Source of the DNA: Paraphysomonas bandaiensis
Taxonomy: Eukaryota > Protista > Chrysophyceae
Direction: 5' to 3'
DNA: 64,000 nucleotides
Assembly: GCA_965644295.1 (NCBI GenBank)
Contig: CBFFRP010000032.1
Span: forward strand, 59,208 to 123,207
Shown: positions 12,243-48,311 of the stretch, in pieces
Numbering within the stretch: the stretch's first letter is position 1
How the letters are laid out: each line of letters begins with the position of its first letter
Notes under the pieces: generated by a model
Told to the model about the DNA's origin: nothing
The model's database searches: none
What the model saw: the letters and a program-made list of their open reading frames with translations, nothing else
Position numbers and translations under genes: made by a program

Positions 12243-12793
12243 ATGAATTCGAGTGGCAGCTGAACCGATGCAAAAGATCAATTAATTATCCCGTTGAACT
12301 GCTGAATCAATGCAATACACCTGCCAGCTGATGACTATATAGAATGGAAGGAAGCATAACACACACAGTCCTCACCACAGCACAACGGAAATTGTTATAT
12401 GTTTCTTCATACCGTATATTCTGGACCTAGTTTTCCTAGTTTTCCGTTGTCAGCTGACATAAAAGTCGCTGTTTCTACAGAAAACGACTTTTGCCAAAAG
12501 TGGAGGCAGATACAGCAGTATGCTGCTGCCAAGCTATAAAGTCCACAGCAGAATACAGTATACGAAGTATGCTGCAACATCTACAGAGTACATACACACA
12601 TATCCAGCAGTCCAAACATACAGTACATACTGTACATGTACTCTGCTCATGTCAGTCACGGTATGGTGCAATCCTCTGCAAGGCTCAACTAAGAATATAC
12701 ATACATACATACCGGCCACATACAATTGTTAGTGACCCGTCTGTAATAGTCTCCCTATAGTGCACTACTATATAATAGCTACCCTATAGACGT

Positions 12794-20961: not shown

Positions 20962-23900
20962 TCAGTCGAAAATGCCTAAATTAGAATGTTCAACCATTGA
21001 TTTCTTCATGGGACCAGACGGACGGATAGATTTCGTGTGACCGACAAGATAGTTGACGATGTCATTGTGACCATTGTGGTATGCCAGCAATGCAGGTGTT
21101 AAACCACAATCATTCGGATGCACACTTTGCACTCCGTTTTCTACGAGCCACTTTACAATATCTATATCACCAACAGCGCATGCCATATGGAGAGCAGAAT
21201 TTTGGCTAGAACTGATGTGATGAATGGAGCAACCCTGTTGCGCCAACCACCGTGCCATATTTAGATTACCAGAGAGACACGAGTAAAGGAAGGCCGTGCG
21301 ACCTGATATATCTGCTTTGTCAATCGAGGCTCCGTTCTTTATTAGGCAAACCACGACATCAGGAACATTGTTCATACATGCAAAATGCAAAGCCGTTCGC
21401 CCAAATTTATCGACATCATTTACATCAAAAGTTTCCGTCTGGGATAGCAGTAGCAATACCAGGGCTGCATAACCGTTTCGTGCAGCCGTATGTAACAACG
21501 AGCAACCCTGTTCGTCTCGGACAAGGAGGTCCAAATGTGGCAACACTGACCTCGGCATATCAAAAACGTCTCTCAGTAAATCTGTCATGCCACGTCTACA
21601 CAAAATATGCAGCGGTGTCACCCCTTTTTTATCTTTAGCCATCAAATCCCCACCCGCCTTAATTAGAAACATGATCAAATCCGAGTACTGCTTTTCACAA
21701 GCTATATGTATTGGTAGCGAGCCATCGGCAGAAAGAGAGTGCAGTAAAGCACCTTTGCTCAATAAATACTGCACTATTGAGACGCTACCAGACATGCAAG
21801 CTAAATGCAGCACCGTGTAATTTTCAGGTGAGTTGCTGGACAACACTGACGTACCAGTTTCGATTAAATAGCGGCAACGCATTAAATCTCCTTCCTTACA
21901 GGCTCTGAACAACTCCACCTTCATTCGCTCTGACTCAATATTAGCCTCATCAGAGGTTGTGGTGCATTGTTCAATTTCACTATATACATCTGCCAACTTG
22001 TCATATTCTGACTCGAACCCAAAGTTGCCGCTGTATTCCTGAGTGCTATCCGACATACAGGAGAACATTGATGTCTTCTTACGAGAAGTGGTTAGGCCTG
22101 CAGAAACACCAGGACTGTTTCCCTCTTCTCTTGGGCGACTTCTCTCGATTTCCATTGTATTTTTCACATCCGTACTGAACCATGTAATGATATCCACATG
22201 CTGATATTTGATCGCCATAGATAGGCACGAGTATCCATGTACATCTTTCACTAGTGGATCCGCACCGTATTGAAAGAGCAACCTCGCCATATCTAAATGA
22301 CCTTTCGCAACGGCATAGAAGAGAGGTGTTCTACCGGAATCTGTTCTTTCGTCCACTTCGTGCCCTTGCATGATCAGAAACTTGAGGTACTCTGTGTGTC
22401 CGCATCCGGCAGCGTAATGCACCAAAGTTTTACCGTGGGGAAATTTTCGCTTCGCAATCATCGTCGGGTTCAGGGTTTCTAAAATAGTCTTCGCACTCGT
22501 GAAATCGTCGACTCGTAATCGATCTTCGAGTGTTCCGAGCGACGAAAAGACTTCTTCATCATCATTTCCCGTACAATCAACATCGGTCAGTGGTTTCGCT
22601 AAATCCTCCAGCAAATGTTGATGCCCGTTTGCCGAAGCCATATGAATAGGAGTTACACCACTGGAATTCGGCTTTCGAGGGTCTAAACCAATGCTCATTA
22701 ACCACCTGGCAACATCCATATGCCCATTTTCACAGGCCAAATGCAAAGCCGTGTTTAAGGGATCAGACGAGCCACCAGTACGAAAAGCATCAACCTCTTC
22801 GCTGTCATATAGCCACTGCAAAATTCGCAAATGTCCAAAGTATGAAGCACATAGAAATGGGGTAGAGCCAGAATTATCTGCAGCGTCAATCTCTACCCCA
22901 TTCTTCACTAGCCACATTGCTAATCGAAGATGGCCATAAAGGCATGCTATATGCAATGGAGTACGCCCAGATATCTTATTCCTACGATGCACGCTCGATC
23001 CTCGGCGAACTAAATATTTGGCGATATCAATATTTCCATTTGCGCAAGCCTTGTCCATTGGAGTATGATCGTGAAGATTTACACCCTCTAAGTCTTGGCC
23101 ATTATCAACCAGAAGACGGACAAGTTCACAGTTTCCACTCGAACAAGCACCATGTAAACAAGTATCCCCAGAATTATTGACAGTATTCAACGGACACCCA
23201 CTCAAACTGAGCAAATATTCAACGACATCGTAATTCCCATGAAGACAAGCTACATGAAAGGGTGTATTTCCATTAGAGTCTTTGCAGAGCTGCATTGCTC
23301 CGTGCTGTAAAAGAATACGAACGCCGGAAGGTGAGCAGCTTTCACATGCTCGATGTAGAGGTGTACGACATTCCATATCCATTGCATTAGCTAATGCTCC
23401 TTTCTCAATTAGTAGGTAAATGCATTTTATACACCCCTTCGAGCAGGCCAGATGTAGCAAAACTTCTCGTTTCACGCTCAAAATATTGGGGTCAAATTCA
23501 TCAAAAACATCAACCAGGGATTTCAAGAAAGTGTAATTAATATGTTCACATACATAATGCCAGATCGTGAATCCCTCAATGTTTCGGAGCGTTGAATCCG
23601 CGCCAATAGACAGCAGCCATGCTGTTAACTCAAGAAATTCTCCTTTGCATGCAAGGAACAACGGTGTTTCACCATCATTATTCACAGCATTCACATCGAC
23701 ATTAGCTTCAAACACAAGCCACTGGGAAAGAGGAATAGATCCAACTGTGGCGGCAACATGAATCGAGCAATTGCCACAACATTCTTCGAACGGTGTGCAG
23801 GGATCTGCCCCTTGTGCAACCATCATCTTCACGGCATTGACATCTCCAGCCCTGCATGCAGCAAGTAAACTGCTTTTCAAGCCACGTCGTGTTGTGTCAA

Positions 23901-26900
23901 CGTCGAGAACAACTTGCTCTTCAGTTGGAAAAGATGTTGGACTATTTATTTCATAATTACCGGTTGGTAGCAAGTAAGGAACGCCTAATTTCGTTTCGAA
24001 TGTAAACACAAAAATATCTAGCGAAGAGTATATATTACATTACCTGAGTCGTCAACAGAAGATAGTTTCTCCAGCCATGTCGCAATGTCAGTATTCCTCG
24101 CCAGTCGTGAAATTTGAATAGCTGAAAGGCCTGCCTTATTTCGAACGTCGGCCCGAAGACCAGCTGACACAAGCCACTCAATGAGACCTGTATTCGATGT
24201 GCGGCAGGCGAAATGCAACGCACTGTTTCCCGACAAGTCAGTGAATGACATGGCAGCGCTGCCTTCCTCTACTAGACATTTTGCAATTTCGAAATACCCT
24301 GCAGCACACGCAGACAGAAAAGGTGTCATGCCATGAATATCACGGCGATTAACAATCGCATCATAAGAAAGCAAACAGCGAACTGCATCGACATGGTTGT
24401 TACTTGCAGCACAGTGCAAAGGTGTTGACCCATTATCATCAGTTGTATTTACATCCGCAGAGTTCGACAATAAGTGTTCCAATACATGCACATGTCCTCT
24501 GTAACTGGCACAATGAAGAAGGCTTAATCCAGTTGACGACGACAGATTAACATTATCAGCGGTAATGTAAGGAAGTAGAGATTCTAATCCATTCAAACAA
24601 ATGTAGTGCATCGGGGTCAGTCCCATCGCACTTGGAGTTAAGAGGCAAGCACCTTGATTGACGAGCCACGCAGCAACATCTGGATGGCACTCCTGACAGG
24701 CATGGGTTAATGGAGTCATTCCTTCATCATCATACTCATCCAATTGGGCACCGTATTCATATAACAATTTCATAGAGTCTATGTCACCAGCTCCTGCAGC
24801 AAGGTGGGGTGCCCCCCTTCCATCCTTGAGGTAAAAATGAATATCCACGCCAGAGTGGAGAAACTCCTGTACATCACGTGATCTTCCCTCACGACAAGCT
24901 CGTAAAAAGTCAGTTTTCTGTTGTAAGACTCGTTTGCACTCCGCTTCTTTTTCATCATTAATAAATACCCCTTCCACTTCCAGTGAATCAGACTTAATTG
25001 CTCTTACTTCCGTAGAGTCTACCAAAGCGCGCAAGTGAAGTAAATATAACTCTCCTTGCCCAGTGACGTATTTCCTCATATAGGATTTCCAAAATTTGGA
25101 TGCAGTGCTAAGTTTACCTGTGACCTCATCACCTTCATCATCTACCAAAACAAAGTGATCGATTGTGCTTTCAGTTTCGTTTACAGAGAACAAAGACAAT
25201 ATAATTTTACTCATTTCGGACCATGTCAACTCTGCAGAGAGATAAGCCTCTTTGATTGAACCGTTTTCTTCATTTCCCATCCGGAAACGAACTTTTTCTG
25301 TTGTACTATCTGTAGAGTTGGGAGTTGACGTTAACTGCTGCACAGTATTAACCGATTCTACGCCACTGCACTGCCCGATATGATTCAATAAAGTGCTATG
25401 CAGTCTAGCATTGGTAATTAGTGCGTCAGCAGTAGAAGCCTGCACAAAATCAACATAACTCCCAGCGCTCATCGAAGTGGACACGGTATCAAGTTCAACT
25501 GCAAATCGAGGGTGGCCAGCCCCACTATCCAATGGAGCATTCCTAAACGACTCCCAGAATTTGGTTGCTGTTTGGATTGGTTGCCCAATTACGACATCTT
25601 CCTTATCGAGAAGACTTAAACTCCGAATCCAATTACTTCTGGTTTCAGATAATTTGCAATTAGACAATATCGCCGTTGTTAGGTCGTCCCAATTTGCATG
25701 ACAGTTGACAGATACAGCAACTACATTTCCAGCGTTCGTGACAACAGTAAATGTAACATCACCTTCATGGGAATGACATGTTGGGGAGATTTGTACTTCT
25801 CTCTCGTTCTCTTTTTCAAATACCAAATAGTGCAGGGGAGCATATAACTCTGACATTTTCATATGAAATGACCAGAAGCCCTCCTTGGTTTGAAGTTTCG
25901 CACTCATCACCTTCCCGTTAGCATCAAAACATTGGAAATATAATATACTCTTCGATTCAATCCCGAGCTGTGCTGCCACTTCGGACCAAATATCGAAACC
26001 GGGGCTTGAATGAAATGGTACAGATATATTAAAAACATGACTTCTGCTATTTTTCATCGCCACAGTAAAGTCGTAATTTGTTGATACCTCAGGTGTATCA
26101 TCTTTGCCATGTTGCTGCTTGGTGTTCACTGCAGCGAATGAGCATTTTGAGATTGAGTCGTAATCAAACAAAGTTTCGACTTCGGATATTGGTGCGCTCG
26201 ATTCGCCAGAGCTGTCATGAAACAAAATAACAGACTCCACAGCTTCATTCGATGGTATCGACAGTGCTTCAGAAAGAGAGCATACAAATTCACTCCAGAT
26301 ACAATTCTTCGGAACAGTCACAGCAGCAGATTTCGAAGAATTTCGAGATAAAAAAAAAGTGATTGTGATATCACTTGCTACCCCCATTTCTGTGTCATTC
26401 CCCATATCAATGCTGCTCTCGGTGTCTGCATGTACATTCTCTTTTTCAGGGATACTCTCAACAAACTCAAACCCACTCTGCAGAGAATCATGGCTGGCAC
26501 CAACCTTTTGAGTTGTAAGTTGAACCACTACTCGCAAAGTATTACCATTGCCATGAAAAGCGACAAGTTTCCAAAGTTTGGCAGCTTCATTAATTTTTCC
26601 ACTCAGTTCATCACCATCATCGTCGATCAGTATTGCGTGCGAAACTACTGTGCTTGTCGGAAGCGTTTCAACCTCACATAACACATTCAATATGTCGTCC
26701 CATGTTACTCTCTCGTGAAGTACAACAACCTTACGATTCGCAACAACATCGTTATCCAAATAGGCATCGACAGTAACAAAAACTTGCCGTTCGTCAGTAA
26801 CGACACTTGGTCTGTCCTTGCTAGATTCAGGTTGTTCTTGAACTATAGGATCACATACTGCCGGAAAAAAATTCTTATCAACATTATCCTCACCACAGAT

Positions 26901-29900
26901 ATACACAGCGAGGGTCAACACTTCAGAGAAATCAAATCGATCAACATATTTCCAAAATTTTGACAACGACTTCAAAGGTGTGCTCAACGCCTCACCAGAT
27001 GAGTCGACTACCACGAAGAAATTTATATCCGTCGAGACTGGCAAACCAAGCGATGTCGAAACCAACTCCAGTATCTCCTCCCAAGTGCAATGGCGGGGCA
27101 AAAACAAGTCGAATTGTTTATCTCCATCAGGATACAAGTAAAACTTAAAATGTCTTGATGAGGCTTCCAACTCAGTATTATCTTCTGTACTACCATCGGA
27201 CAAACAGACATTCACAACAAGTCGCAAACCAGCAATATTTGCATTAAACTTGAGTAGTTTCCAAAGTCTGCTATACTCTGTAACTTCGCCACTAAGTTCT
27301 TCGTCGTCGGCATCTAGTAAAGCAACACTACGGATCAATGAACATTGAGAAATGGAAAACATATCCGATATGCTGCTAACTAAATCATCCCAACTACCCT
27401 TCTGATTCAATGATATCACCCTCTCATCATCAGGAACATCTTTGATAAATGTAAGAATAGAAAACACATCTTCAGAACCACCTAAACCGTCTGAATCATT
27501 AGAACACAAGTTATGGGTATCGCTCTGCACTTCTACTGATATATCCTCGCTATCAATGGACGCAGACTTAGATCTATTTTCATTAAGATACACAGCGAGG
27601 GTCAACACTTCAGAGAAATCAAATCGATCAACATATTTCCAAAATTTTGACAACGACTTCAAAGGTGTGCTCAACGCCTCACCAGATGAGTCGACTACCA
27701 CGAAGAAATTTATATCCGTCGAGACTGGCAAACCAAGCGATGTCGAAACCAACTCCAGTATCTCCTCCCAAGTGCAATGGCGGGGCAAAAACAAGTCGAA
27801 TTGTTTATCTCCATCAGGATACAAGTAAAACTTAAAATGTCTTGATGAGGCTTCCAACTCAGTATTATCTTCTGTACTACCATCGGACAAACAGACATTC
27901 ACAACAAGTCGCAAACCAGCAATATTTGCATTAAACTTGAGTAGTTTCCAAAGTCTGCTATACTCTGTAACTTCACCACTAAGTTCTTCGTCGTCGGCAT
28001 CTAGTAAAGCAACACTACGGATCAATGAACATTGAGAAATGGAAAACATATCCGATATGCTGCTAACTAAATCATCCCAACTACCCTTCTGATTCAATGA
28101 TATCACCCTCTCATCATCAGGAACATCTCTGATAAATGTAAGAATAGAAAACACATCTTCAGAACCACCTAAACCGTCTGAATCATTAGAACACAAGTTA
28201 TGGGTATCGCTCTGCACTTCTACTGATATATCCTCGTTATCAAGGGACGCAGACTTAGATCTATTTTCATTAAGATACACAGCGAGGGTCAACACTTCAG
28301 AGAAATCAAATCGATCAACATATTTCCAAAATTTTGACAACGACTTCAAAGGTGTGCTCAACGCCTCACCAGATGAGTCGACTACCACGAAGAAATTTAT
28401 ATCCGTCGAGACTGGCAAACCAAGCGATGTCGAAACCAACTCCAGTATCTCCTCCCAAGTGCAATGGCGGGGCAAAAACAAGTCGAATTGTTTATCTCCA
28501 TCAGGATACAAGTAAAACTTAAAATGCCTTGATGAGGCTTCCAACTCAGTATTATCTTCTGTACTACCATCGGACAAACAGACATTCACAACAAGTCGCA
28601 AACCAGCAATATTTGCATTAAACTTGAGTAGTTTCCAAAGTCTGTTATACTCTGTAACTTCACCACTAAGTTCTTCGTCGTCGGCATCTAGTAAAGCAAC
28701 ACTACGGATCAATGAACATTGAGAAATGGAAAACATATCCGATATGCTGCTAACTAAATCATCCCAACTACCCTTCTGATTCAATGATATCACCCTCTCA
28801 TCATCAGGAACATCTTTGATAAATGTAAGAATAGAAAACACATCTTCAGAACCACCTAAACCGTCTGAATCATTAGAACTCAAGTTATGGGTATCGCTCT
28901 GCACTTCTACTGATATATCCTCGTTATCAAGGGACGCAGACTTAGATCTATTTTCATTAAGATACACAGCGAGGGTCAACACTTCAGAGAAATCAAATCG
29001 ATCAACATATTTCCAAAATTTTGACAACGACTTCAAAGGTGTGCTCAACGCCTCACCAGATGAGTCGACTACCACGAAGAAATTTATATCCGTCGAGACT
29101 GGCAAACCAAGCGATGTCGAAACCAACTCCAGTATCTCCTCCCAAGTGCAATGGCGGGGCAAAAACAAGTCGAATTGTTTATCTCCATCAGGATACAAGT
29201 AAAACTTAAAATGTCTTGATGAGGCTTCCAACTCAGTATTATCTTCTGTACTACCATCGGACAAACAGACATTCACAACAAGTCGCAAACCAGCAATATT
29301 TGCATTAAACTTGAGTAGTTTCCAAAGTCTGCTATACTCTGTAACTTCGCCACTAAGTTCTTCGTCGTCGGCATCTAGTAAAGCAACACTACGGATCAAT
29401 GAACATTGAGAAATGGAAAACATATCCGATATGCTGCTAACTAAATCATCCCAACTACCCTTCTGATTCAATGATATCACCCTCTCATCATCAGGAACAT
29501 CTTTGATAAATGTAAGAATAGAAAACACATCTTCAGAACCACCTAAACCGTCTGAATCATTAGAACACAAGTTATGGGTATCGCTCTGCACTTCTACTGA
29601 TATATCCTCGCTATCAATGGACGCAGACTTAGATCTATTTTCATTAAGATACACAGCGAGGGTCAACACTTCAGAGAAATCAAATCGATCAACATATTTC
29701 CAAAATTTTGACAACGACTTCAAAGGTGTGCTCAACGCCTCACCAGATGAGTCGACTACCACGAAGAAATTTATATCCGTCGAGACTGGCAAACCAAGCG
29801 ATGTCGAAACCAACTCCAGTATCTCCTCCCAAGTGCAATGGCGGGGCAAAAACAAGTCGAATTGTTTATCTCCATCAGGATACAAGTAAAACTTAAAATG

Positions 29901-32900
29901 TCTTGATGAGGCTTCCAACTCAGTATTATCTTCTGTACTACAATCGGACAAACAGACATTCACAACAAGTCGCAAACCAGCAATATTTGCATTAAACTTG
30001 AGTAGTTTCCAAAGTCTGCTATACTCTGTAACTTCGCCACTAAGTTCTTCGTCGTCGGCATCTAGTAAAGCAACACTACGGATCAATGAACATTGAGAAA
30101 TGGAAAACATATCCGATATGCTGCTAACTAAATCATCCCAACTACCCTTCTGATTCAATGATATCACCCTCTCATCATCAGGAACATCTTTGATAAATGT
30201 AAGAATAGAAAACACATCTTCAGAACCACCTAAACCGTCTGAATCATTAGAACACAAGTTATGGGTATCGCTCTGCACTTCTACTGATATATCCTCGCTA
30301 TCAATGGACGCAGACTTAGATCTATTTTCATTAAGATACACAGCGAGGGTCAACACTTCAGAGAAATCAAATCGATCAACATATTTCCAAAATTTTGACA
30401 ACGACTTCAAAGGTGTGCTCAACGCCTCACCAGATGAGTCGACTACCACGAAGAAATTTATATTCGTCGAGACTGGCAAACCAAGCGATGTCGAAACCAA
30501 CTCCAGTATCTCCTCCCAAGTGCAATGGCGGGGCAAAAACAAGTCGAATTGTTTATCTCCATCAGGATACAAGTAAAACTTAAAATGTCTTGAGGCTTCC
30601 AACTCAGTATTATCTTCTGTACTACCATCGGACAAACAGACATTCACAACAAGTCGCAAACCAGCAATATTTGCATTAAACTTGAGTAGTTTCCAAAGTC
30701 TGCTATACTCTGTAACTTCACCACTAAGTTCTTCGTCGTCGGCATCTAGTAAAGCAACACTACGGATCAATGAACATTGAGAAATGGAAAACATATCCGA
30801 TATGCTGCTAACTAAATCATCCCAACTACCCTTCTGATTCAATGATATCACCCTCTCATCATCAGGAACATCTTTGATAAATGTAAGAATAGAAAACACA
30901 TCTTCAGAACCACCTAAACCGTCTGAATCATTAGAACACAAGTTATGGGTATCGCTCTGCACTTCTACTGATATATCCTCGCTATCAATGGACGCAGACT
31001 TAGATCTATTTTCATTAAGATACACAGCGAGGGTCAACACTTCAGAGAAATCAAATCGATCAACATATTTCCAAAATTTTGACAACGACTTCAAAGGTGT
31101 GCTCAACGCCTCACCAGATGAGTCGACTACCACGAAGAAATTTATATCCGTCGAGACTGGCAAACCAAGCGATGTCGAAACCAACTCCAGTATCTCCTCC
31201 CAAGTGCAATGGCGGGGCAAAAACAAGTCGAATTGTTTATCTCCATCAGGATACAAGTAAAACTTAAAATGTCTTGATGAGGCTTCCAACTCAGTATTAT
31301 CTTCTGTACTACAATCGGACAAACAGACATTCACAACAAGTCGCAAACCAGCAATATTTGCATTAAACTTGAGTAGTTTCCAAAGTCTGCTATACTCTGT
31401 AACTTCGCCACTAAGTTCTTCGTCGTCGGCATCTAGTAAAGCAACACTACGGATCAATGAACATTGAGAAATGGAAAACATATCCGATATGCTGCTAACT
31501 AAATCATCCCAACTACCCTTCTGATTCAATGATATCACCCTCTCATCATCAGGAACATCTTTGATAAATGTAAGAATAGAAAACACATCTTCAGAACCAC
31601 CTAAACCGTCTGAATCATTAGAACACAAGTTATGGGTATCGCTCTGCACTTCTACTGATATATCCTCGCTATCAATGGACGCAGACTTAGATCTATTTTC
31701 ATTAAGATACACAGCGAGGGTCAACACTTCAGAGAAATCAAATCGATCAACATATTTCCAAAATTTTGACAACGACTTCAAAGGTGTGCTCAACGCCTCA
31801 CCAGATGAGTCGACTACCACGAAGAAATTTATATTCGTCGAGACTGGCAAACCAAGCGATGTCGAAACCAACTCCAGTATCTCCTCCCAAGTGCAATGGC
31901 GGGGCAAAAACAAGTCGAATTGTTTATCTCCATCAGGATACAAGTAAAACTTAAAATGTCTTGAGGCTTCCAACTCAGTATTATCTTCTGTACTACCATC
32001 GGACAAACAGACATTCACAACAAGTCGCAAACCAGCAATATTTGCATTAAACTTGAGTAGTTTCCAAAGTCTGCTATACTCTGTAACTTCACCACTAAGT
32101 TCTTCGTCGTCGGCATCTAGTAAAGCAACACTACGGATCAATGAACATTGAGAAATGGAAAACATATCCGATATGCTGCTAACTAAATCATCCCAACTAC
32201 CCTTCTGATTCAATGATATCACCCTCTCATCATCAGAAACATCTTTGATAAATGTAAGAATAGAAAACACATCTTCAGAACCACGTAAACCGTCTGAATC
32301 ATAAGATATATCATTTTCCAATTGATCCGCTGTAGTCAGATTTTCGTCTTGTTTGGCTAAAGATTTCTCGTTCTCTAATTTTTCAACACAATGAACGGCA
32401 AACGTTAAAACCTCAGATGCTTCATACCGATCAACCAATTTCCAAAATTTGGACAATGTGTTCAAGGTCGCACTTAGAGATTCACCTGTGCTGAGGTCCA
32501 CATAGATAAAATGGTCAATTTCATGCGTTAATTTTACATCCAGCGACGATGAAACGACATCAACAATTTGATCCCATGTGCTGCGACGAGGTAAAAACAG
32601 GTCAATCACCTTCTCGGAATAATGAGGCAAGAAAAACTTGAAGCGCCTTGAGTCTGATGAGTTATGATATCCCGCAGATAAAATTCCTGCTTCATTTGAA
32701 TTGATATGTACTGCGAGACTGATTCCACTAGAATGTTTGTGAAACGAAAAGAACTCGAGAAGAGTTTTATACTCAGACAATTTACCACTGAGCTCATCAC
32801 CATCATCATCCATCAAAGACAGGTGTGTTATCACACAATCTGGCGACAACTCCAGCGTTTTCGCAATCAGTTTCATCAAGTCATCCCAATTTTCCGTTGC

Positions 32901-35900
32901 ATACAAATTAATATAGCGCGAAATAGTAGGAGAACCACTGAGATACACAGGGATAGAAGGACAATCTGAGAAAAAAGTTAATCACGAATTACACTTCATA
33001 CAAGCACTCATTACCCGATAGTTCACCAGAGCTTGACCGAGATCGTTCCAATGACGGCATGCGAATAATAGGTAGTTCTGCCTTACTAGATCCCTGGCTA
33101 TTATCAAGATATACTGCAAGAGTGAGGACTTCAGAAGAATCAAAACGATCAACGGCTTCCCAAAACATTGTCACAGACTCAAGTGGGGTGCTCAAAGCTT
33201 CTCCAGATGAATCCACAACTATGAAGAAGTCGATTAAATTAGGAGAGTGCAACTCCAACGCGGACGAGACAAGAACAAGAAGATCATTCCAGCTGCTATG
33301 GCGCGGAAAATAAAGATCAAAATATTTCTTTCCATAGGGAAATTTAAAGAATTTAAAATGGCGAGATACAGTTGGAGTATTATCCGAGGCCACAGAAGCA
33401 TCTCCTTGTTTACAAGCTAGACCAGATAAACCATCACTCGGAATAGTATGGGCAACTACAACGAGGTCTTGTACATCACTAAACATATCTATAACTTTCT
33501 TAAATATAGGAAAACTCTTTATTGGAGCACTGAGGGCTTCACCGGAAGAGTCTGCGATCGTAAGGTATTCTACACTACCTGCCGTTTGTGACTCAAGAGT
33601 ACTGGAAACCTGCGCTATTAATTCTTCCCACGTTTGGATCTTTGCAATATCAATATTGGTAGCACAAGCAATATCACCTGTATTCAGTGATACTTTCAGA
33701 GTCTTCGAAGGGCAAACATCATATGCAGAAGCTAAACAGGTGGGCAGCACTTCTGTATACCTTTCGCATACATGAACCGATAACAACAGCAGCTCTGACG
33801 ACTTCAACCTATCATAGCACTTCCAAAAAGTCGACATAGACTTTAGTGGAGCGCTAAGTAATTCACCACTTGAATCAGTCGCTTCGAAATAATCAACACA
33901 CTCATTAGACTGGAGCTTCAATGCCTCCGAAATCAGCTTCGTCGACTCTAACCATGAAATATCGCGAGATAAATATACATCGACAGGGGGTCCTCCCTCT
34001 TCCTCTCTTCGAATTCTCACGAGTACTGGCCCCTCAACGTCAGTTTCACCACCTGATGATGAAGACCGTGAAGCAACTACTTCTACAGAATCTTCCACGG
34101 AGACTTTCGTCGAAGGCTTATTTTCTTCAACATACACAGCTACTTTTAACCCGTCGGTATACTTGTGAAAAGTCAAGTACTTCCAAAAAGCTTTGCAGTC
34201 GAAAATATATCCACTTAAATCATCGCCGTCAGAGTCTATTACTTTGACGTGAGTTATACTCTGCCCAACAGGTACATTCAACGCCATCCCCACCGACGCG
34301 GATATCGCATTCCAATCGTCATTGTGACGTAAAGATACATTGCGAGCATATATCTTTGTCTTAGATGCCAGAAAAAAAGGTACAGAGATGGTCGCTGAAT
34401 TACATAACGAGTGACTAAATACAGCGCATATATATTATCACATACCTGAAGCATCAGTACCAGGCGTCATAAACAATTTAGCAGAATCTTGATTATCAGA
34501 ACACCCTTCTTGTATCCTCGTGTATGCAGCCAGCAAAATTACTTCAGAAAACGGAACACGGTCTACGTACTTCCAGAACTGGGTGAATGATGATAAACAT
34601 GGGCTCAAAATGTCACCATCGGAACTGATGGCAAAAAAGTACTCTATCGCATGTGGAATATCAAGCTCTCTCTTTGCTGTGTGCATCATATCTCGCCATG
34701 TCATGTACCGATTAAATTCTACTGCGATTTGAAAGTCTCTATTGGAACAGATACAGCATTGGAAACACCTTTCAGTTGGCACTACCGGTACACCTTCTGA
34801 AGCTGAGCAATATTCACCACTTTCTGACTCCTTGATATGTACAACAATTCGGACATCTGACAAACTTTTATGAAACAATAGCAATTTCCATAAACTTTTA
34901 TAGTCGTCAATACAGCCACTAAGGTCATCACCCTCAGTGTTAATTAACACCAAATGCGATACACTGTAACCGCAAGGGACTTCCAGTGATGCATTTATTA
35001 AGTTTGATAGATATTCCCAATCGTCATCAGCATTTAATGATAGCAATCGTACTTTCTCCGAGTAGCCAGCCAAATTAACCGCAACCAGGAAAATATCTAA
35101 GCGAAAGCATCAGTTCGTAAATCACCAGCAGCATAATGGGTTACGTACCTTGTTCGTCGTGGCTCACATGTTTGGAATGTTCACACAATTCTTCTTGCCT
35201 TGCACACCGTTCATAAGAGTCTTCGCACAAATCATTGGCATATAGGTGTACTGCCAACGTTATAGTTTCCGATATCCCCACGCGATCCACGTATTTCCAA
35301 AATATGTCAAGTGAAGACAACATAGGACTATCAGCGTCGCCAATGAAATCCACCGCAATGAAATGCTCAATACACCGAGCATCCTTGATATCAAAAGTTG
35401 CTGAAATTAGCATCAAAATTTCCTCCCAGCTCATATATCGGCTAAGTAATACATCACTGATCTTTTCACGAAAAGGGTATAGAAAAAAATTGAACCGTCT
35501 TGATGTTGGGACAAATATGGTAGAACATCCCGTGGAAATTTCCTCATGAGGATTGACAGTATCCAAAGCGAGGCAAACATCGACATTCTTGTGGATCATC
35601 AGTAATTTCCATAGCATAGTTCCATCAATGATATTACCGCTCACTTGATAACCATTTCCATCCATTAAGGTAAGACGGGTACCTGAATCACATGGCACCC
35701 CAAGTGCGTTCGAAATTACAGATAAAACATTACACCAGCTATCGCCCCAGTTGAGTGTAACCAGCAATTTTTCGGCAGCCTTTGAACACAAATACACTGG
35801 AATCCGAAAAGCTACAAGCAACAGTTATATCATTTAATTGAGTCGATACATATTCACCTGCTAAACTACCAGGCGCTATGGTTTCTGCGTCGAACAGATC

Positions 35901-38459
35901 ACCAGCATTGAAGATTTTCTCTTCAGCACCCTCTGGCGTTGCCGCCACAGCTGCAATAGCTTCTTCACCATCCCGTTGAGTACAACCCCCAGCAACTTCA
36001 GAGCGGATATTATTTTCAACACTGTCAAAAGTTTTTCCAGTGTCACTTCTACTACAACTAGATAAAGTTGGCTCCAACTCACTTGTAGTTTGCAAAGTAA
36101 TATGTGCCAGGGTCAGGTCATCTTTTAAAATAGCAATAGATTTCCAGAACTGTCTCGCGTTGTGCAAAGGTGGACTAAGTATGTCACCATCAGAGTCAAC
36201 AATGCAACACGATAGCACCAAGGATTGCGCAAGTCCCACAGGGCAGGATAGTACGTTTACAATTTCTTCCCAAGTAGCACCCTCACGTATTAACACGTCC
36301 GCATCTATACCTCCATGCCTAACGGAAATGGCAATATGCTCTTGACACGCCTCATCACTTGTGACAGAATTATACGAACATTCTGTCTCCTCAAAGAAGA
36401 GGGATACAGTCCCACCAGATTCAACATAAACTCGTAAATAATAAGAACCATCATCAAATCTATAATTTACTATTCTCTTCCAAAATGATTCTGCTGTGGT
36501 AATGCATTTTCCACGAAGATTTCCGTTGGCTTCTACAATCTCGAACGAATGAATACATGCATCAGATGGAATATCCAACGAAGTCGCAAACAACTCCTGG
36601 AGAGAGTCCATACTGCATCCGTGTGGAAGTGTCACTATGATATCACTGACTGGCGACACCCTCACTCTCACAGACAGCTGTGCTGAAGCAAGATCAACCA
36701 CATAGCAGACAGAGTCTGCGTCATATTCCCTGTCCTCGCGAGACAGGAGCTGTACCAATTCAAATTTAGAAGATACGCGGTCTTGCATATAAGTCACATC
36801 TCCACATGACGGAACTAAGGATGAGATACTATAACTTGACACTTCAAGAGCTGTTGAAATGAGTGCTACAATATCGCACCACTCCATACTACCTGATAAC
36901 GTGACAAATTTGGGGGGGGAGGCAAGTGATAAGGTTACTGCAATTCGCCAAGCAATATCCACATATATGGAAGGCGAAAACTTGGAACACGTACTTCTAC
37001 AGGTGTTTCTGTTCGTACTTTCAGCATCGCATAATAGAGCCCATAAATTGTCACTTTCATACAATACAGTTTCATCATCCTCGCTGTTGCGAAGTGTCAA
37101 CGAGGATAACAAATGACACTGCTTCAGGTTCAGTGTCCTTCTGATGAAACCCTTCAGGCCGGATACACTTACTGTATCGTCGATACGAATCAAAGGTGAG
37201 TCCAAGTGGGATGAAAACCCCTTACTTTTAATCTGCACCATAAAAAAGTTTTCACCTTTGGCAATACTAGCAAATGACATCCCATCATCGAAGCTGTATG
37301 CATCACAGGCTTTCCAAAACGTATCCACACTTTCAATAGTCGGACCAATACGCCTACAGTTTCCATCCAGTACACATATGCTGACGATTTTACGGTCTGA
37401 CTCACTCCAACCATCGTAAAGATTCAATGAAAACGCTTCCAATAATTCATTCCACGACTGCTGCTGGCCGATGTGGAATATCGCACTGTGCTGGACATCA
37501 AAATATTTACAGCCTCGTAAACGTATATTCCCTACACGGCGCATTATGCACGCACAAAGTTAACGTTTTGACGTACCTCGAAAATCAAATTTTTTACCAT
37601 GAACGAGAGCTGTACGTCCATCATAAAACACTTCGGAAAATACATGGTCTTGAAGTGCCACGGTATACACCCTCACATGTGTACGACGGTCAATCTCCAC
37701 ATTTTTCTTGTATCTTCGCCAGACATCTGCTACACATGTCGTTTCTACACCAATAGCATCACCTTCTCCATCCACGACCTCCACTCCAGTAACACGTAGG
37801 GTGGACACTAAATGTAGTCCGGATGCGATCATATTCAACGCATCTGTCCATGCAGCTGTACTTGGAATCTTCACAACTCCTTCCACAGACGGAGAAACAG
37901 ATAATACACATGGAAGTGGATGGGACTCAGGAGCGTGTACCATTAGGCTGCATATGCTTCTACCATCATGAGTATTCGAAACTATCTCCCAGAATGATGT
38001 CTTATCTGTAGCTTCAATATCAACACTACTCTCCATCAATGAAAACTTCGAGATTGAGTCGCCCCTCAAATTATCGAACTTCTTTGAAATTGCATGAGTC
38101 AGTTCATCCCAAGAACAATTAGCAATTACGTCAACAAGGGCATGTTCATTTAGATCAAAACACAAGAACACTCTAAGCTTGATTATACTGTCATGCGAGA
38201 GAACAAACATACAACTTTCTGCTGGATTGTAGGCTGTGTCAAACATGTCCCAAAAAGTACTTGAGTCGCTTATTTCTTTGCCATAAATATTATCTATCCC
38301 ATAAATTAATGAAACACAATAATTGGTCACTGGTATGTCAAATGCGGTTGAAACTTCTCTCAGTAATGACTTCCAAGGACACATCCGGGTCAGAAGTACA
38401 TCTTTCTCCACCACAGAATCACAGTTTTCGATGTATCGAAATCTTATTGTCTCTTGCAT
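20962..38459 (-). CDS. Giant protein of about 5,731 aa: about 35-40 tandem PB1-like beta-grasp modules followed by about 30+ ankyrin repeats; 7 exons
   Basis: Seven ORFs join in frame through six phase-1 GT-AG introns read directly from the sequence: 37532-37576, 35812-35857, 35097-35148, 34395-34445, 32966-33014 and 23985-24043. The spliced CDS is 17,196 nt, divisible by 3. The recurring module is hhhxL...W-x-x-h...hh-D-x-D-G-D/E-x-L-S...FWK...LAV. C-terminal GxTPLHxA ankyrin repeats. Confidence 0.88.
26903..32302. repeat. Near-identical coding tandem array, 687-bp unit (229 aa, two PB1-like modules) x about 7.9
   Basis: Identical antisense ORFs recur at 26960, 27647, 28334, 29021, 29708, 30395, 31079 and 31766 (spacing 687, once 684). 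Only scattered SNPs and an in-frame 3-bp indel differ between units. Confidence 0.97.
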
Positions 38460-39124
38460 ATCTGTAATTATCTACACACAACAAATGGAAACTATACGAT
38501 GACGGCTCCTTTAAATTGTTGAGTACATTTTCTTATTGCAGTGATTTCTTTAATAGTTCGATGAGACCGAACACACGCACCGACAGTTCAGCTCAATCCT
38601 CTGCTAGCTATGATGTCAAACTAAAATCGTTAAACCGAAGATTCACACTAATGATAGCATAGACGAGTGGGTACGATTTCACAGATTAATAGTTAGTTTC
38701 TCTCTCATGATGTGGACTGTGTCTGTCAATCACAATGGAAGCCACTTGCGGCTATGAAAATTTCATGTTCCAGGGAAGGAATATGGCTATTTTTATGGAT
38801 TTCTCTCATTTTATTGATAATATCGGTACTTTTGATGTAAAAAGCATATGTGTATGAAAAGTAGAGTATACTGGTATACTGGTATACTGGTGTACTGGTA
38901 TACTGGTATACAGCAGTGTGGGGTGAATTCAAGGAGCCAGTATAACTATACTGTTCGCTGTTCGTCGTACAGTGCTGGTGTTGGTAATTTTTTAAAGGAG
39001 GACACAGAAAACTCACAGTTACTTCTAAGACTGCGCCTCGTCTTATTCCTGCTTATCATGAAGCCTGTATGATAGCATATATTCACGGGGTGTTGACATA
39101 GCTCCGTCACTAGAATAATCTCCA
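38460..39124. promoter_or_regulatory. Putative bidirectional promoter between the two PB1-ankyrin genes, containing a (CTGGTATA)n minirepeat at about 38866-38911
   Basis: 665 bp between divergent ATGs at 38459 (-) and 39125 (+). An 8-bp unit is repeated about 5.5 times. Function is inferred from position only. Confidence 0.45.
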
Positions 39125-42100
39125 ATGGGTGATATATATAAATTTCGAAATGCTCAAACTAAAGAAGAATGCTCGGTGTTCATTCCCTCTAACATATCGT
39201 GGAGTCAATTAATTGGACTTGTTTCATTAAGATTGGATTTAAAACACAGTGTCACTCACTTTGCTCTTGTCCAACAAACGTCGCCCTTTCCTGTGTCAAC
39301 CATAGCAGATGTAAACCAATTTGTCGATGGATGTAAGCTATATAGCACTGTGCCAGGACCAGCCTTTGTGGTGCATTTGGGCAACTCTGTGGAGTCTTGT
39401 GGGATAGGTACAATTGTTTCTGTTCTCCGAAAGGTTCTAATTTATCTATAGATACTTCCGCGCACCTCGACAAAAAGTTAGATTCTTCGAATATACGAGC
39501 TGTCAATGTGAACTCAACCACACATTTTGATGGTAACACCACCGCGAAACAATCTATTGATAAGCCTCTTCAGACCTCACCTCATAATTCCCCTCCATCA
39601 TTGGCGTTTATTGGAATTCAGAAGCATCAATCCGTTGTACAGAGCTGTAATAATGGGACATCGAATCAGTGCCGCATTGCCATCAAAGTAGCGGACTCCA
39701 ACTCTGGAGAAGTGTTTCATGTATCTATTCCAGCGAAGTGTCCATGGAATGATCTCGTGAAGTATATAACTACTGAATTCAATCTTGTACGATGTGATAC
39801 TATAACCCTGATGTTGAAAGACAGTGATATGGACCGTATGAGCCCTGTCATTGATTCTGACAGTAAATTTTGGAAGTATTACACCACTCATTGTAGAGAA
39901 GATGGAAGCTACTTTGAAGTACTTGGAGGTAATAATGTGTTATCTGAGCCGTCACTCCCATCGACCAGGGGTTCCCCTCAAAGAATTGGTCAGCGTGCAG
40001 ATGATATATTGTCTACTTCTCCAGAGCTTCCTCTGCAAAAGAAGCCAGCGTTAAGTTCTAGTAAGGACTGCTCTCAGAGCAGTTCAAGCAAGACAAAAAG
40101 GCAATATAACACTTGCTCTACCCAATTAGCTGATGCCACAAAGGCCGTGAGAGCATCAATACCCAGCCATGACTTGAGTGCTCTGATGGATGCCTGCAGT
40201 CGGGGAGACATTGCTACGGTACAACGGTTATGCGACCAATCACCCTCGGCTTTGTGCCACTGTGATGACAGTGGAAACACCCCACTTCACATAGCCGCAT
40301 TGCATTCACAAAATGCTGTGCTGGAGTATTTGTTGAGATCTCGTGCGAACATTCTTGCAAGAAACAATGTAGAGAACACGTGCATTCACATACTGTGTGC
40401 GAAAGGAAACCTTCCCATTGTGAAGCAAATGAAAGTTAGTCCAGGGTTCGACGTGAATCTTCCTCGGCCTGATGATACACGTCTATTACACTTGGCATGT
40501 CGCTCCGGTAACTATGATTTGGTGGTCTGGCTGGTTGAAAACGGAGCCAAAGATATGAATATCGTTAATGAGAACAGTGTAACCCCGTTGCATTTTTCGT
40601 GCCTAGGGCCACACTTAAAAATTGCTCAATATTTAGTTGCTCAAGGTGCACACGTAAATGTCCGTGACAAAAGTGGCTTTACTCCCTTATTTTTTGCTTG
40701 CTCGTTTGCTGACTTTGTAATGGTGCAATGGCTTGTTTCACAAGGTGCCCTTGTTGATATAGCGAGCCACAAGGGTGATACTCCTTTGCACTTAGCGGTT
40801 GCTCGTGGCGATGAAAGTATTGCAAGGTTTTTAGCTGAGCAAGGTGCTAATTTAGAGCTGCGTAATGGAGATGGCCTGACTGCTGTGGAACGAGCGCAAC
40901 TGCGGAAAAATACTCAGTTAGCCCATGGTTTGCTATCAATATATCAGAAAGGATGTCCCTCACCAGATGAAGTTGACATTGTTGCCGCGTTTCACAAAGC
41001 TTGTGCGGATGGCAGAGAGATTGATGTAGCCTCTTATCTTGACCAAGGTATAGACCCAGGTGTACGCAATTCAAAATATTACACCGGGTTACACTTTGCT
41101 GCGATGTATGGCAAGATTGAAATAGCAGAGATGCTGCTGGACAGTGGGGCTGAAGTAAATGGCATAGATAGACATTTAGGCAAAACCCCACTGCACTTGG
41201 CCAGTGAGCATTCACAGGTAGAAATGTCGCAGTGGTTAGTTCAACGCGGTGGTGCAAACGTTATGCTATGTAGTTTTGACGGTCGGAATTGCTTGCATTA
41301 TGCTGCACTCAGTGGAAACTCTGCATTAATGGAGTGGTTTGTAGAACTGGGAGTAAATCCTCATGCGGTTACCGTGGAAGGTAGCTCAGTATTACATAAT
41401 TGCTGTTTTGCTGGCAATTTGCCGGGTGCTATGCTCTGCGTGTCGCTAGGTGTATCGGAGACACTGACAGACTCGTACAAATCCACACCACTTCATGTCG
41501 CATGTGAGCATGGATTTGAAGACCTGGCTAGGTGGCTGTTAGATGTGAATTCCGACCACATTAATGCTCCTAATATTCATGGAATGACTCCATTCCTATT
41601 GGCTGTATTCAATGGACACTTTGAGTTAGTGAAGGTCTTGAGTGATCGTGGTGCAGATACTAATGCTCGTGCTTATGCCGCACGGCAAAGGAATTCTGCC
41701 GCTCATTTTGCATGTATTAGGGGCTCTCTGCGGATATTTCAATGGTTAGCAACATGCTTGCATGTCGACTGTTCCTCTTTTAACAATCAACATGAGACTC
41801 CGGTGTCACTAGCACGAAAGCACAATCACAAGGAGATTCTTTCTTGGGTTGCGGAATTTGGAGCAGAGCATGGTATTGACATGGAGGCTTTATCGGATTG
41901 CTGTCAGGTTCTTGATACATCACCTGTTAGCAACTCCAATTGTCTCATTCCTGCTGTGCGTGCTGGTGACTTAGATTTAGTTAATCACCTTGTCAGTAAT
42001 GGAGCTAATGTCAATATGACATATGAAAAAGGCGTCACCGCGTTACATGCTGCGTCATCTCAGGGCAGACTTGATATTGTAAAGTATCTTGTTGAGCATG

Positions 42101-43242
42101 GGGCGGATGTGTCTATAAAAGACAATGAGGGGATGACCGCTTATGATTACGCTGTAAATGGTAATCATTCTTACATTGCGATGTGGTTGAAGCCATCGGA
42201 AGTTAAATCTTTGTGTAAAACGAAATCTCCGTCTATGCTTTTTTCATGTTTCACTTTATCCGATGATATTGCTGATTGTCCTCCATCGGAACCAACTTCA
42301 GATTACGAAAGCAACGCAGAATCTATTGCACCAAGTCGCTACAATGACTTTCGTGTGGCTTGCAGTGATAATGACTTAAATACAGTCAAGGCGCTTGTCA
42401 AGCAGGATAGTATGTGCGTGCGTACAACTATACAGCCAACTGGTAGAACTGGGTTGCATTATGCATGCCTTCATGGGAATTTGGGAATAGCGGAATATTT
42501 AATTGAAAATGGTTCAGATATTAATGCTGTTGATGATGAGGGTTCAACTCCGCTTCATCTTGCTTGCGAGGAAGGAAAAAACGATGTTGCGCTTGTGCTG
42601 ATTCGCAGTGGTGCTGATATGAGTATCTACGACGACTTCGGCACTACAGCACTACATAAAGTGTGCGAGCACGGTTTATTATCTCTAATGAAAAGAATAA
42701 TAGATTATTCTCAGTCAGTGCTTGATTTAGATATGACTATGAAAACAGAAGACGGCGGCTTATCAGCCATGCATATTGCAGTCGACAAGGAAAATGTAGA
42801 CATGGTGAAGTTGTTGACTTCTGTTCCAGATTTAGTGAATGCCAGGGACGAATTTCATCGAACTCCTCTTCATGTTTGTAGCATTGATGGGAATTGCACT
42901 ATTGCTGAAATTCTTCTCGATTGTGGCGCATTCATAAACGCCAGAGATGATGACAGTATGACTCCTCTGCTATATTCTTGTACAAATGGGCACTTAAAAC
43001 TAGCTAAACTCTTAGTTTCGCGAGGAGCTAACGTGTTAGCTGAGAGTGAGAAACAAGGAAATTGCTTGCACATGGCTTGCAAGCGAAATGATTTTACAAT
43101 GATTAAATGGCTTGTTGTTAAATGCGGTGTCGACCCAAATGGGGAGAGTTTTCAAGGCGTATCTCCTCTGCAGATAGCGCGTAGTTTAGAATCTACTCAG
43201 ATCGCAGATTGGTTGTTGGCGAGATGCAGTACTAGCAGTTGA
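39125..43242 (+). CDS. About 1,357-aa paralog: two PB1-like modules plus about 25-30 ankyrin repeats; 2 exons
   Basis: Phase-1 intron 39408-39451 joins ORFs 39125-39451 and 39397-43242 in frame (CGI/DTSA). The module IAIKV...VSIPAKCPWNDLV...LMLKDSDMDRMSPVIDSDSKFWKYY matches the giant gene. Many GxTPLHxA repeats. Confidence 0.88.
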
Positions 43243-43570: not shown

Positions 43571-43877
43571 TATTGAACTACAACCAACTCCTACGTGCGT
43601 ACTTGAAGTTTGGTAAAGTCAATCGCTAGTAGTTATCCTGTATTCTATGTAGCAATGAAATACAGAATATACATGACTACAGTATAGGAGTAGCTATTAC
43701 AAGTATACAAAGAAACTGAAAATATAGTAGCTGTTAAAGATATGATTTGTAGAACAGAATGTTGATGTTGGTAAATGACGTGGTTCCTAACTCACAGGGC
43801 TACAACATCATAAACTTACTATATCTCCTATAATATCAATCAGTCAATATTGCACTAACTAAAAGCGTAAATTAATA
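43571..43877 (+). repeat. 5' LTR (TATT...AATA termini)
   Basis: Base-for-base identical by eye to 48360-48666. Confidence 0.95.
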
Positions 43878-46800: not shown

Positions 46801-48311
46801 AATTAAAGAGCCACAGACGCTGGCAGAAGCAAAGAAGACTCCACAGAGAACATACTGGATTGAAGCTACCAGGAAGGAGGTGCACAAGCTTGAACGAAGG
46901 ACATGCTGGAAGATTGTCCGAAGGCCGAAACACCGAAAAATCATAAAATCTAAATTGGTCTTTAAAGTAAAGCGCGACCATCTTGGAAAAATTAAGAAGT
47001 TCAAAGTTCGACTTGTGGCGAAAGGGTTTACTCAAGAACAAGGAGTCGACTATAATGAGACATTCTCCCCAGTAGCTAAAGGTGTATCATTTAGGCTAGC
47101 ACTAGCACTGGCTCTGCGATACAATCTGCAACTCCGTCAACTCGATGTAGAAACGGCATTTCCGTATGCAGATCTGGACGAAGACGTGTTTATGTCTCCA
47201 CCTGCAGGAATAGATATTCCACAAGGCTGTTGTTTGAAGATTCTGAAGAGTTTGTATGGCCTAAAACAAGCGCCTCGAAATTGGCATTCAATGCTGAAGG
47301 ACAGTATAAAGGCGATGGGATGATATCATTGTGCTCAGCTCTGACAGCCGTCATATTGAAGAAGTCATCAGCGCCTTTAAGACTCAATATGCCATGCAAG
47401 ATATGGGGGACCTTAAGCATTATTTAGGTCTTACCATTGAGCGTCATAATGGCCAGATTAAGTTACATCAGTCTGCATATGCTAAAGATGTTGTGGCCAG
47501 ATTCAATCACTTGTTGTCAGAAAAGAAGAGACGGTGCAAGGCAACCACACCTCTACCACCTGGCCTAAAGTTGTCCAAGGATGCAAAAGAGGAAGAAACT
47601 CGAAAACAGAGAGAATACGTTGATGCATTTCCCTATCAATCTGTTATTGGTGCCTTAATGTATTTGGCAGTGCATACTAGACCAGACATGGCATATACAG
47701 TAAATCTTCTCTCCCGGTTCACCACAAGACCCACGTACGCTGCATGTCAAGCTGCTCTGCATACTTTATTGTATTTAGAAAATACAGTTGATCAAGGTAT
47801 CATATTTCCTAATTTCACAGATGAAGACCCTCTATGTGTGTACTCTGATGCAGATTGGGCCGGAGATCTGGATACATGCAGATCCACTACAGGGTATATC
47901 GTATATCTGTGGGGTGCTCCAATTGCATGGCAGTCCAGACTGCAGCCAACAGTGGCTACGTCGACTATGGAAGCTGAATATATGGCTGCATATGCTGCAA
48001 TTCAGGAGATTGTATGGATACGAGGGGTGATGACAGAGCTCGGAATTCGTGGATTTGAGCTCAGTAAGAATGCGTCTCCAACAATCTTGAATATGGACAG
48101 CAAGAGTGCGATTGATCTAGCTCAGAACCCGGTAAATCATAAACGTTCCAAGCATATTCGGATCAAGTATCATTGGATTCGAGAGCAAGTGGGAGGCTGT
48201 ATCGTCAGGCTGAATCATGTGCCAACGGCAGAGATGACAGCAGACGTGATGACTAAAGCCTTGTCCGAGAAGCTGCACTATCAGCATGTGCACACTATGG
48301 TATCGCACTAA
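43877..48311 (+). pseudogene. Copia gag-pol polyprotein, broken by a deletion/frameshift at about 47320 within RT
   Basis: Zinc knuckles CNKCKKLGHFAREC and CEICDIPGHQTKDC. Protease YLDSGC. GAG-pre-integrase LWHKRLGH. Integrase D..D..E (PEMNSLSERTNR). RT KVRLVAKGFTQ, QLDVETAF, SLYGLKQAPR. RNase H YSDADWAG...STTGY. The stop at 47323 coincides with loss of the segment before DDII. Confidence 0.93.

Follow-up and report, generated by a model that had tools for sequence, protein, structure and literature searches.

In a 64,000-nucleotide stretch of contig CBFFRP010000032.1 from the chrysophyte Paraphysomonas bandaiensis (assembly GCA_965644295.1, positions 59,208 to 123,207; hereafter the window), the minus strand between positions 20962 and 38459 carries what we read as a single intact gene for a giant cytoplasmic scaffold, consisting of 39 PB1-like modules that are arranged as beads on a string, joined by flexible acidic linkers and followed by an ankyrin-repeat anchor. 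We give this reading a probability of about 0.55. The protein would act as a multivalent scaffold or tether: its ankyrin end would dock on a fixed partner, and each bead, held between disordered acidic, Ser-rich linkers, would present a predicted binding face in which the conserved D-x-x-G-[DE]-x-L-S loop between b3 and b4 is joined by F-W-K from helix a2 (b and a denote the strands and helices of a module). In PB1 domains this predicted face would correspond to the acidic OPCA face. Searches were run exon by exon or with modules, and structures were predicted for one or two modules at a time.

The gene consists of seven minus-strand open reading frames (ORFs), whose coordinates agree exactly with those of an earlier reading made from the letters and their ORFs alone (the sequence-only reading). 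Its proposal that the seven ORFs splice into one coding sequence (CDS) is borne out: at each of the six breaks a canonical GT..AG intron restores the frame, all six are of phase 1, and they have donors of the form RG/GTA(C/A/T)G or GTGAAT and YAG acceptors (Table 1; a slash marks the exon end). Exons 3 to 6 open exactly at strand b1 of a module. Intron 6 has two candidate acceptors and is of phase 1 with either, the 59-nt version being closer to the sizes of the other introns. The exon translations of 294, 557, 220, 216, 459, 2973 and 1017 aa amount, with the six split codons, to 5,731-5,742 aa, matching the earlier estimate of about 5,730 aa. The exon structure shows, at the level of sequence, that the seven ORFs form one intact spliced gene. 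Several independent genes, or a pseudogene, might be argued for from the stops that divide the seven ORFs and from the lack of transcript data at this locus. We regard this as highly improbable, because short canonical introns of phase 1 bridge all six breaks, the internal ORFs lack an ATG and would start in the middle of a module or an ankyrin repeat, the gaps of 8-144 nt between ORFs are too small for promoters, and no stop interrupts the roughly 17.2 kb of exon sequence. Of the seven ORFs, five begin without an ATG and offer only GTG or TTG as 'starts'. A bacterial pseudogene and an alternative genetic code were considered as well and ruled out: the source assembly is eukaryotic (62.6 Mb, 669 contigs), the stops at the breaks include all three codons, and each break has a canonical intron.

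The module array was delineated with a hidden Markov model (HMM) that was seeded with one A-type and one B-type module (see below) and converged after one round. The model finds 39 modules of ~90 aa (i-Evalue 3e-8 to 1e-33) over a total span of ~4,390 aa, within the 35-40 copies over ~4,400 aa read previously. Exons 1 to 7 contribute 3, 5, 2, 2, 4, 23 and 0 modules, respectively; module 6, in exon 2, is degenerate, with just 39 aa matched. The hallmarks of the module are a near-invariant Trp that opens helix a1, the loop D-x-x-G-[DE]-x-L-S, and F-W-K in helix a2. An acidic D-x-D-G-D/E loop had been taken to mark the modules, which holds for some of them: the complete D-x-[DE]-x-[DE] acidic core occurs in 18 of the 39 modules (7 of 25 distinct ones), mostly of A-type, and is missing from the others, and is therefore not a feature of every module. 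The ankyrin repeats indeed follow the modules, with four Pfam Ank stretches closing exon 6 and another 18 in exon 7, at least 22 repeats overall; Ank_2 exceeds the Pfam threshold in both places (136 and 454 bits, respectively). The Pfam matches of the exons include no catalytic domain, and neither a signal peptide nor a transmembrane segment was found, the top value of the Kyte-Doolittle (KD-19) profile being 1.99, within a folded module. The sequence-only reading had likewise seen none of the three.

The fold of the module was predicted with AlphaFold2 (AF2), using an alignment of 54 modules from the giant gene and its paralogues. The B-type module is modelled with a predicted local distance difference test score (pLDDT) of 94 and a predicted template modelling score (pTM) of 0.83, with the topology b1-b2-a1-b3-(b4)-a2-b5 and a full helix a2; a second model gives a matching fold pattern for the A-type module. 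The order of elements is the beta-beta-alpha-beta-beta-alpha-beta pattern anticipated from the translations. A Foldseek search against the PDB returns nothing but ubiquitin-like folds. The highest template modelling (TM) scores, 0.64-0.71 with a root-mean-square deviation (rmsd) of 2.5-2.6, belong to the PB1 domains of MEKK2/3 and NBR1, namely MEKK2 (2npt_D, TM 0.66/0.71, rmsd 2.6), MEKK3 (2c60, TM 0.64/0.71, rmsd 2.5) and the PB1 domain of the AtNBR1 filament (TM 0.64/0.69). The ubiquitin-like domains (UBLs) of TBCE and UBL4A obtain marginally better E-values, yet TM-scores of just 0.43-0.55. A second structure search, independent of Foldseek, ends in a tie among ubiquitin-like families, with scores of 9.4 for the USP7 UBL, 9.3 and 9.2 for the PB1 domains of MEKK2/3, 9.0 each for the ELMO RBD and the NBR1 PB1 domain, 8.7 each for the Par6 PB1 domain (in complex with aPKC) and the DCX C-domain, and 8.6 for TBCB. 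On these models the module is established as a beta-grasp (ubiquitin-like superfamily) fold, of which PB1 would be the best-fitting subtype, yet one not separated from other subtypes. Prediction on single modules had been suggested by the sequence-only reading as a check for a beta-grasp or PB1 fold, and its outcome is a beta-grasp with its best TM-scores to PB1.

A generic ubiquitin-like or DCX/TBCB-like array has to be weighed against this subtype. Such an array would bind a polymer (for example microtubules) or UBL receptors, with the ankyrin repeats as cargo site or anchor, and would serve as a cytoskeletal ruler or cross-linker. The top Foldseek E-values, those of TBCE and UBL4A, speak for it, as do the neighbours in the ESM Atlas, which are assorted ubiquitin-like families (all leads below 0.9), and USP7 provides a precedent for tandem UBL arrays. 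We nevertheless consider it doubtful: the Pfam DCX and ubiquitin models match 0 of the 54 modules at E<=1, compared to 6 of 54 for PB1, the TM-scores of the UBLs fall short of those of PB1, the module model has a complete helix a2, and nothing found here ties the giant gene to tubulin. The C-terminal array of USP7/HAUSP differs further, as it consists of five UBL domains on a protease, whereas the giant protein has 39 modules on ankyrin repeats; its sequence identity to the modules is 12-14%, and no sequence-profile signal to it was found. The tandem domains of DCX and the UBLs of TBCB/TBCE are likewise set apart by the lack of a Pfam DCX match in any of the 54 modules.

On the side of sequence, PB1 (PF00564) is the sole recurrent Pfam family, with 77.7 bits summed over exon 6, although no single stretch passes (gathering threshold 23.6 bits); the best of the six matching single modules has an E-value of 1.3e-4. 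Run across the entire genome, the PB1 model picks out 10 canonical PB1 loci but misses every module gene. Eight of these canonical PB1 domains, which carry W/Y-x-D-D-[ED]-N-D-x-V-x-I-S-S-D, were aligned and compared with the modules by hhalign, with a probability of 47% (P 1.9e-4) for all modules and of 51% (P 1.6e-4) for the A-type modules. Both alignments place b2, a1, the acidic loop after b3 (DxDGD) and a2 in register. The OPCA acidic motif has the core D-x-D/E-x-D/E after b3 (PMC7051960). Its second acidic cluster is not conserved in the modules, which have L-S-x-x-I...F-W-K there instead. A Lys or Arg in the middle of b1 is found in 19 of the 39 modules (10 of 25 distinct), its position being assigned by sequence column, not by superposition. 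Searches of the PDB with sequence profiles, of all modules and of the A-type only, gave nothing significant, and the matches to the PB1 domains of NBR1 and PKC-zeta are weak (E 0.5-1.3). Matches to calmodulin and CD163 reflect chance resemblance to the motifs D-x-D-G-D and S-W and were dismissed. An EF-hand-like calcium loop was also rejected as the main interpretation, since Gly is at position 4 (D-x-D-G-D, not D-x-D-x-D-G) and the loop sits in the b3-b4 turn of a beta-grasp.

We conclude that the modules are PB1-like, probably a far-diverged relative whose family membership is unproven. The label 'PB1-like' of the sequence-only reading is in line with the best TM-scores; the hhalign probability is about 50%, and no module exceeds the Pfam threshold. 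In comparison to PB1 domains (PF00564/SM00666; p62/SQSTM1, NBR1, Par6, aPKC, MEKK2/3, MEK5, Bem1/Cdc24), the modules share the beta-grasp of ~85-90 aa with the order b1-b2-a1-b3-b4-a2-b5. It is with these domains that they reach their highest TM-scores, and Z values in the top tier; their D-x-D-G-D aligns with the OPCA loop, and some modules have a Lys/Arg on b1 that may correspond to that of PB1. They differ in that single modules stay under the Pfam threshold, in the replaced second OPCA cluster, in the near-invariant Trp of a1, and in the 39 copies of the giant protein, as opposed to usually one PB1 domain per protein.

Modules 9-35 alternate strictly between two types. In the A-type the loop reads D-[DS]-D-G-D-[DE]-L-S-G, and b1 usually lacks a basic residue; in the B-type b1 carries S-R-[RH]-F-K-F and the loop reads D-S-S-G-E-A-L-S, together with F-W-K-Y-V-D-R. 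Linkers from A to B are ~15 aa long, those from B to A ~40 aa, acidic and Ser-rich. In a quick tree the A-types and B-types cluster separately, indicating that the array grew through duplication of an A-B cassette. PB1 domains are divided into types by their acidic motif and lysine, the A-type resembling type 1 (acid only) and the B-type type 2 (lysine only) (PMC7051960); by this definition the modules are acid-only and base-only, plus one of a dual type. Among the 25 distinct modules, 7 have the acidic core, 10 have the Lys/Arg of b1, and 1 has both, compared to ~2.8 expected by chance.

This pattern invites the alternative of a self-zipping or polymerising chain, in which the modules would be true PB1 homologues and acidic A would pair with basic B front-to-back, either within one folded-back, rod-like chain (in cis) or between chains as a network or condensate (in trans). 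Such a covalently concatenated PB1 polymer would come close to the idea of the sequence-only reading. The alternation itself argues for it, together with the complementary motifs (D-[DS]-D-G-D-[DE] and no b1 Lys in A; R-x-F-K-F on b1 and only D-S-S-G-E in B), the alignment of the acidic loop with the canonical OPCA loop, the short A-to-B and long B-to-A linkers, and the fact that the nine-module orthologues described below conserve both the b1 Lys/Arg and the acidic core by position. Cassette duplication by itself, however, yields alternation; all modules are net acidic or neutral, the b1 Lys is only a putative counterpart of the canonical Lys, and the nine-module paralogues consist mostly of acidic-core modules without a basic partner. 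Furthermore, AF2 gives no A:B contact: a single-chain model of two modules consists of two confident domains with a pTM of 0.53 and a linker pLDDT below 50, and shows no confident inter-module contact and no rigid or zipped arrangement. We therefore hold the zipping chain to be unlikely. A more specific version, equally speculative, would be a divergent PB1 lineage of alternating acid-only A and base-only B modules, whose chain closes on itself in cis or interlocks with others in trans through OPCA-lysine contacts and so amounts to a genetically encoded, covalently concatenated polymer, its length tuned by the number of cassettes. If true, the protein would be an ankyrin-anchored and possibly size-setting scaffold or a condensate matrix. 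On the two-module model a beads-on-a-string chain is more likely than a rigid filament assembled in advance. The sequence-only reading had offered a covalently pre-assembled PB1-like filament or scaffold, a proposal that is partly borne out: the model shows no rigid arrangement, and a scaffold role remains the proposed function.

About a third of the giant protein's length stems from a very recent repeat expansion. Of the 39 modules, 16 lie in eight tandem A-B cassettes (684/687 bp each); cassettes 1-7 (U1-U7) are 99.1-100% identical at the DNA level, cassette 8 is ~89% identical. Cassettes 1-7 differ by 10 substitutions and one codon indel, and the variants follow the pattern U1=U3, U2=U4, which suggests that a double unit of 1.37 kb was duplicated. 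From these sequence comparisons the expansion looks very recent and lineage-specific, the latter because the orthologous metagenome ORF P0025 has 7 modules compared to the 23 of exon 6, and no other protein of the 1.84 billion searched has more than 12. Without the amplification the gene would still have ~25 modules.

The giant size could accordingly be incidental, that is, an ordinary member of ~23 modules with a recent neutral or unstable amplification, or a mis-count in the assembly, in which case the number 39 would be meaningless. The near-identity of U1-U7, their 8 non-synonymous to 2 synonymous changes, and the same module counts of P0025 and of all other proteins agree with this. We consider it quite unlikely, since the array is in frame throughout 5.5 kb, its sole indel is a whole codon, and the 23 non-amplified modules already exceed every relative. 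It also concerns the size and not the identity of the protein, and is compatible with the multivalent scaffold.

Several points weigh against the scaffold of PB1-like beads. The fold searches do not set PB1 apart from the USP7 UBL, TBCB/TBCE, DCX and the ELMO RBD, the modules fall below the per-domain Pfam threshold for PB1, and the module profile did not retrieve canonical PB1 proteins among the 1.84 billion representative proteins searched. The near-exclusion of acidic core and b1 Lys is not significant after removal of duplicates, and the A/B alternation may be explicable by duplication of a two-module cassette, or shared ancestry, alone. With 8 non-synonymous versus 2 synonymous substitutions, no purifying selection is visible on the newest cassettes, and with repeats 99-100% identical over 5.5 kb, the number of copies is only as reliable as the assembly.

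The module is not confined to this gene. A survey with an HMM of the module, wider than the stramenopile one suggested by the sequence-only reading, yields 97 clusters at E<=1e-3 among 1.84 billion representative proteins, with 1-12 modules per protein outside the giant gene. Fusion to Ank is found in 21 of the 27 long family members scanned. Smaller members resemble the giant protein in having the same module followed by ankyrin repeats. In the same genome, L023 (G000:C164; 2,027 aa, 9 modules), L024 (G000:C290; 2,020 aa, 11 modules), L025 (G000:C354; 1,828 aa, 8 modules) and L026 (499 aa, 1-2 modules) all consist of modules and then ankyrin repeats, and these paralogues hold array and Ank within one uninterrupted ORF. 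Linkers in L023 and L025 are Lys/Glu/Ala-rich and helical-looking (e.g. E-E-K-H-A-K-A-K-A-L-E-E-F), those of the giant gene acidic, Ser-rich and disordered-looking; judging by these sequences, bead spacing may differ between paralogues. Two pairs of modules in L024 have identical amino-acid sequences (3278-3565 and 3905-4186; 2954-3235 and 3581-3862), indicating recent internal duplication in that paralogue too. Residues 881-2020 of the L024 ORF 440-6499 (+) recur with 100% identity as the public protein P0018 (JGI/IMG, 1,140 aa), and hence the same strain or species is already public, with a truncated gene model. Public labels of family members do not go beyond 'ankyrin repeat protein' or 'hypothetical protein' (P0001-P0009, P0014, others).

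A comparison across species is provided by L023, whose relatives are found at 25-55% identity in JGI, ENA, NCBI, Logan and MMETSP data. All 12 orthologues examined have exactly 9 modules; the fixed number differs from the giant gene with its recent 8-fold cassette amplification. A complete MMETSP transcript of one relative contains 9 modules plus Ank, so array and ankyrin repeats are co-transcribed at least in that relative. Compared position by position, 12 sequences (L023 and 11 relatives) all lack the acidic core in modules 1 and 6 (12 of 12), and 10-12 of the 12 retain it in modules 2-5 and 7-9; the Lys/Arg of b1 is retained by modules 4 and 8. At the sequence level, this position-specific conservation across species provides the best evidence for individually functional beads and a meaningful loop.

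Parts of the giant gene also have counterparts elsewhere. The metagenome proteins P0053, P0072 and P0068 match exon 1 over the full length at 28-36% identity, and P0025 (1,172 aa, 7 modules plus Ank) matches residues 1850-2967 of exon 6 at 34%. P0053 and P0025, orthologues of exon 1 and of the end of exon 6, respectively, appear to lie on one 22,972-bp ENA contig. A further paralogue lies head-to-head with the giant gene on the plus strand (Table 1), the two having a common intergenic region of ~660 bp. A 44-nt phase-1 intron (39408-39451) separates its two modules and is of the same kind as those of the giant gene; the metagenome proteins P0061, P0070, P0078 and P0083 are its orthologues (28-35% identity). 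The intergenic region of the two divergent paralogues contains a microsatellite, (GTATACTG)x5.8, at 38866-38911. In L027 (G000:C74:71500-77500; ORF 28-2991, minus strand) one beta-grasp module occurs with two PH domains and no ankyrin, and one long database match also bears a FYVE finger. By their domain composition, these proteins hint that the module may be used in a membrane or phosphoinositide setting.

The module is covered by no Pfam model in the version scanned, and a literature search for multi-PB1 or beta-grasp-array ankyrin proteins found none, its coverage being incomplete and the result only absence of evidence. PB1 and other small beta-grasp adaptors normally occur as single copies and build their polymers non-covalently. 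New here are a beta-grasp PB1-like family and its extreme array architecture, not a new principle. A lineage that chains up to 39 beta-grasp adaptors onto an ankyrin end represents a natural experiment in covalent multivalency, and the nine-module group, with its fixed number and position-specific charges across species, offers a tractable entry to questions of bead-by-bead binding. The value is tempered by a function that is inferred, by the narrowness of the family (97 clusters), and by a record length that is due in good part to very recent and apparently unselected amplification.

Table 1. Coordinates of the giant gene, its parts, and neighbouring genes in the window.
Feature	Coordinates	Strand	Description
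Whole inferred CDS	20965..38459	-	7 exons, ~5,740 aa; ATG at 38459, stop codon 20962-20964
Exon 1	37577..38459	-	294 aa, modules 1-3
Intron 1	37532..37576	-	45 nt, phase 1, GAG/GTACGT ... GTGTAG, in-frame TAA inside
Exon 2	35858..37531	-	557 aa, modules 4-8
Intron 2	35812..35857	-	46 nt, phase 1, CAG/GTGAAT ... TTGTAG
Exon 3	35149..35811	-	220 aa, single A-B pair (modules 9 and 10)
Intron 3	35097..35148	-	52 nt, phase 1, AAG/GTACGT ... GCTTAG
Exon 4	34446..35096	-	216 aa, single A-B pair (modules 11 and 12)
Intron 4	34395..34445	-	51 nt, phase 1, CAG/GTATGT ... ATTCAG
Exon 5	33015..34394	-	459 aa, two A-B pairs (modules 13-16)
Intron 5	32966..33014	-	49 nt, phase 1, CGG/GTAATG ... TCTCAG
Exon 6	24044..32965	-	2,973 aa, modules 17-39, then first ankyrin block
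Eight tandem A-B cassettes	26781..32270	-	684/687 bp each, 16 of 39 modules
Diverged terminal modules 35-39	25011..26780	-	
First ankyrin block	24084..24896 (approximate limits)	-	C-terminal end of exon 6; Ank_2, best stretch ORF residues 2811-2896
Intron 6	24018..24043	-	CAG/GTAATG donor at 24043; acceptor 24018 (26 nt) or 23985 (59 nt)
Exon 7	20965..24017	-	1,017 aa, ankyrin repeats broken by two non-repeat linkers, no beta-grasp module
Head-to-head paralogue	39128..43242	+	modules 39128-39400 and 39664-39939, then ~1,100 aa of ankyrin repeats
RasGEF-domain protein	6625-7938	-	
ATAD3-like AAA ATPase	10203-12281	-	
PWWP/DEK_C protein	12794-13900	+	
OSCA/TMEM63-type (RSN1_7TM) channel	53492-55393	-	

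Neither the Rfam scan nor the tRNA scan of the window gave a match. Apart from the genes of Table 1, the window contains a CCDC93 homologue (CCDC93_N and CCDC93_CC) at 2350-4162 on the minus strand, whose two overlapping ORFs would be joined via an 82-nt phase-1 intron (3300-3219, CAG/GTGACA ... ATACAG). The polyprotein of a Copia-type long terminal repeat (LTR) retroelement (zf-CCHC, gag_pre-integrs, SH3_retrovirus, RVT_2) is found on the plus strand at 43877-48311 in two ORFs split at about 47323-47331. Towards the end of the window (58001-64000) the GC content rises from ~42% to ~55%, with a strong negative GC skew.

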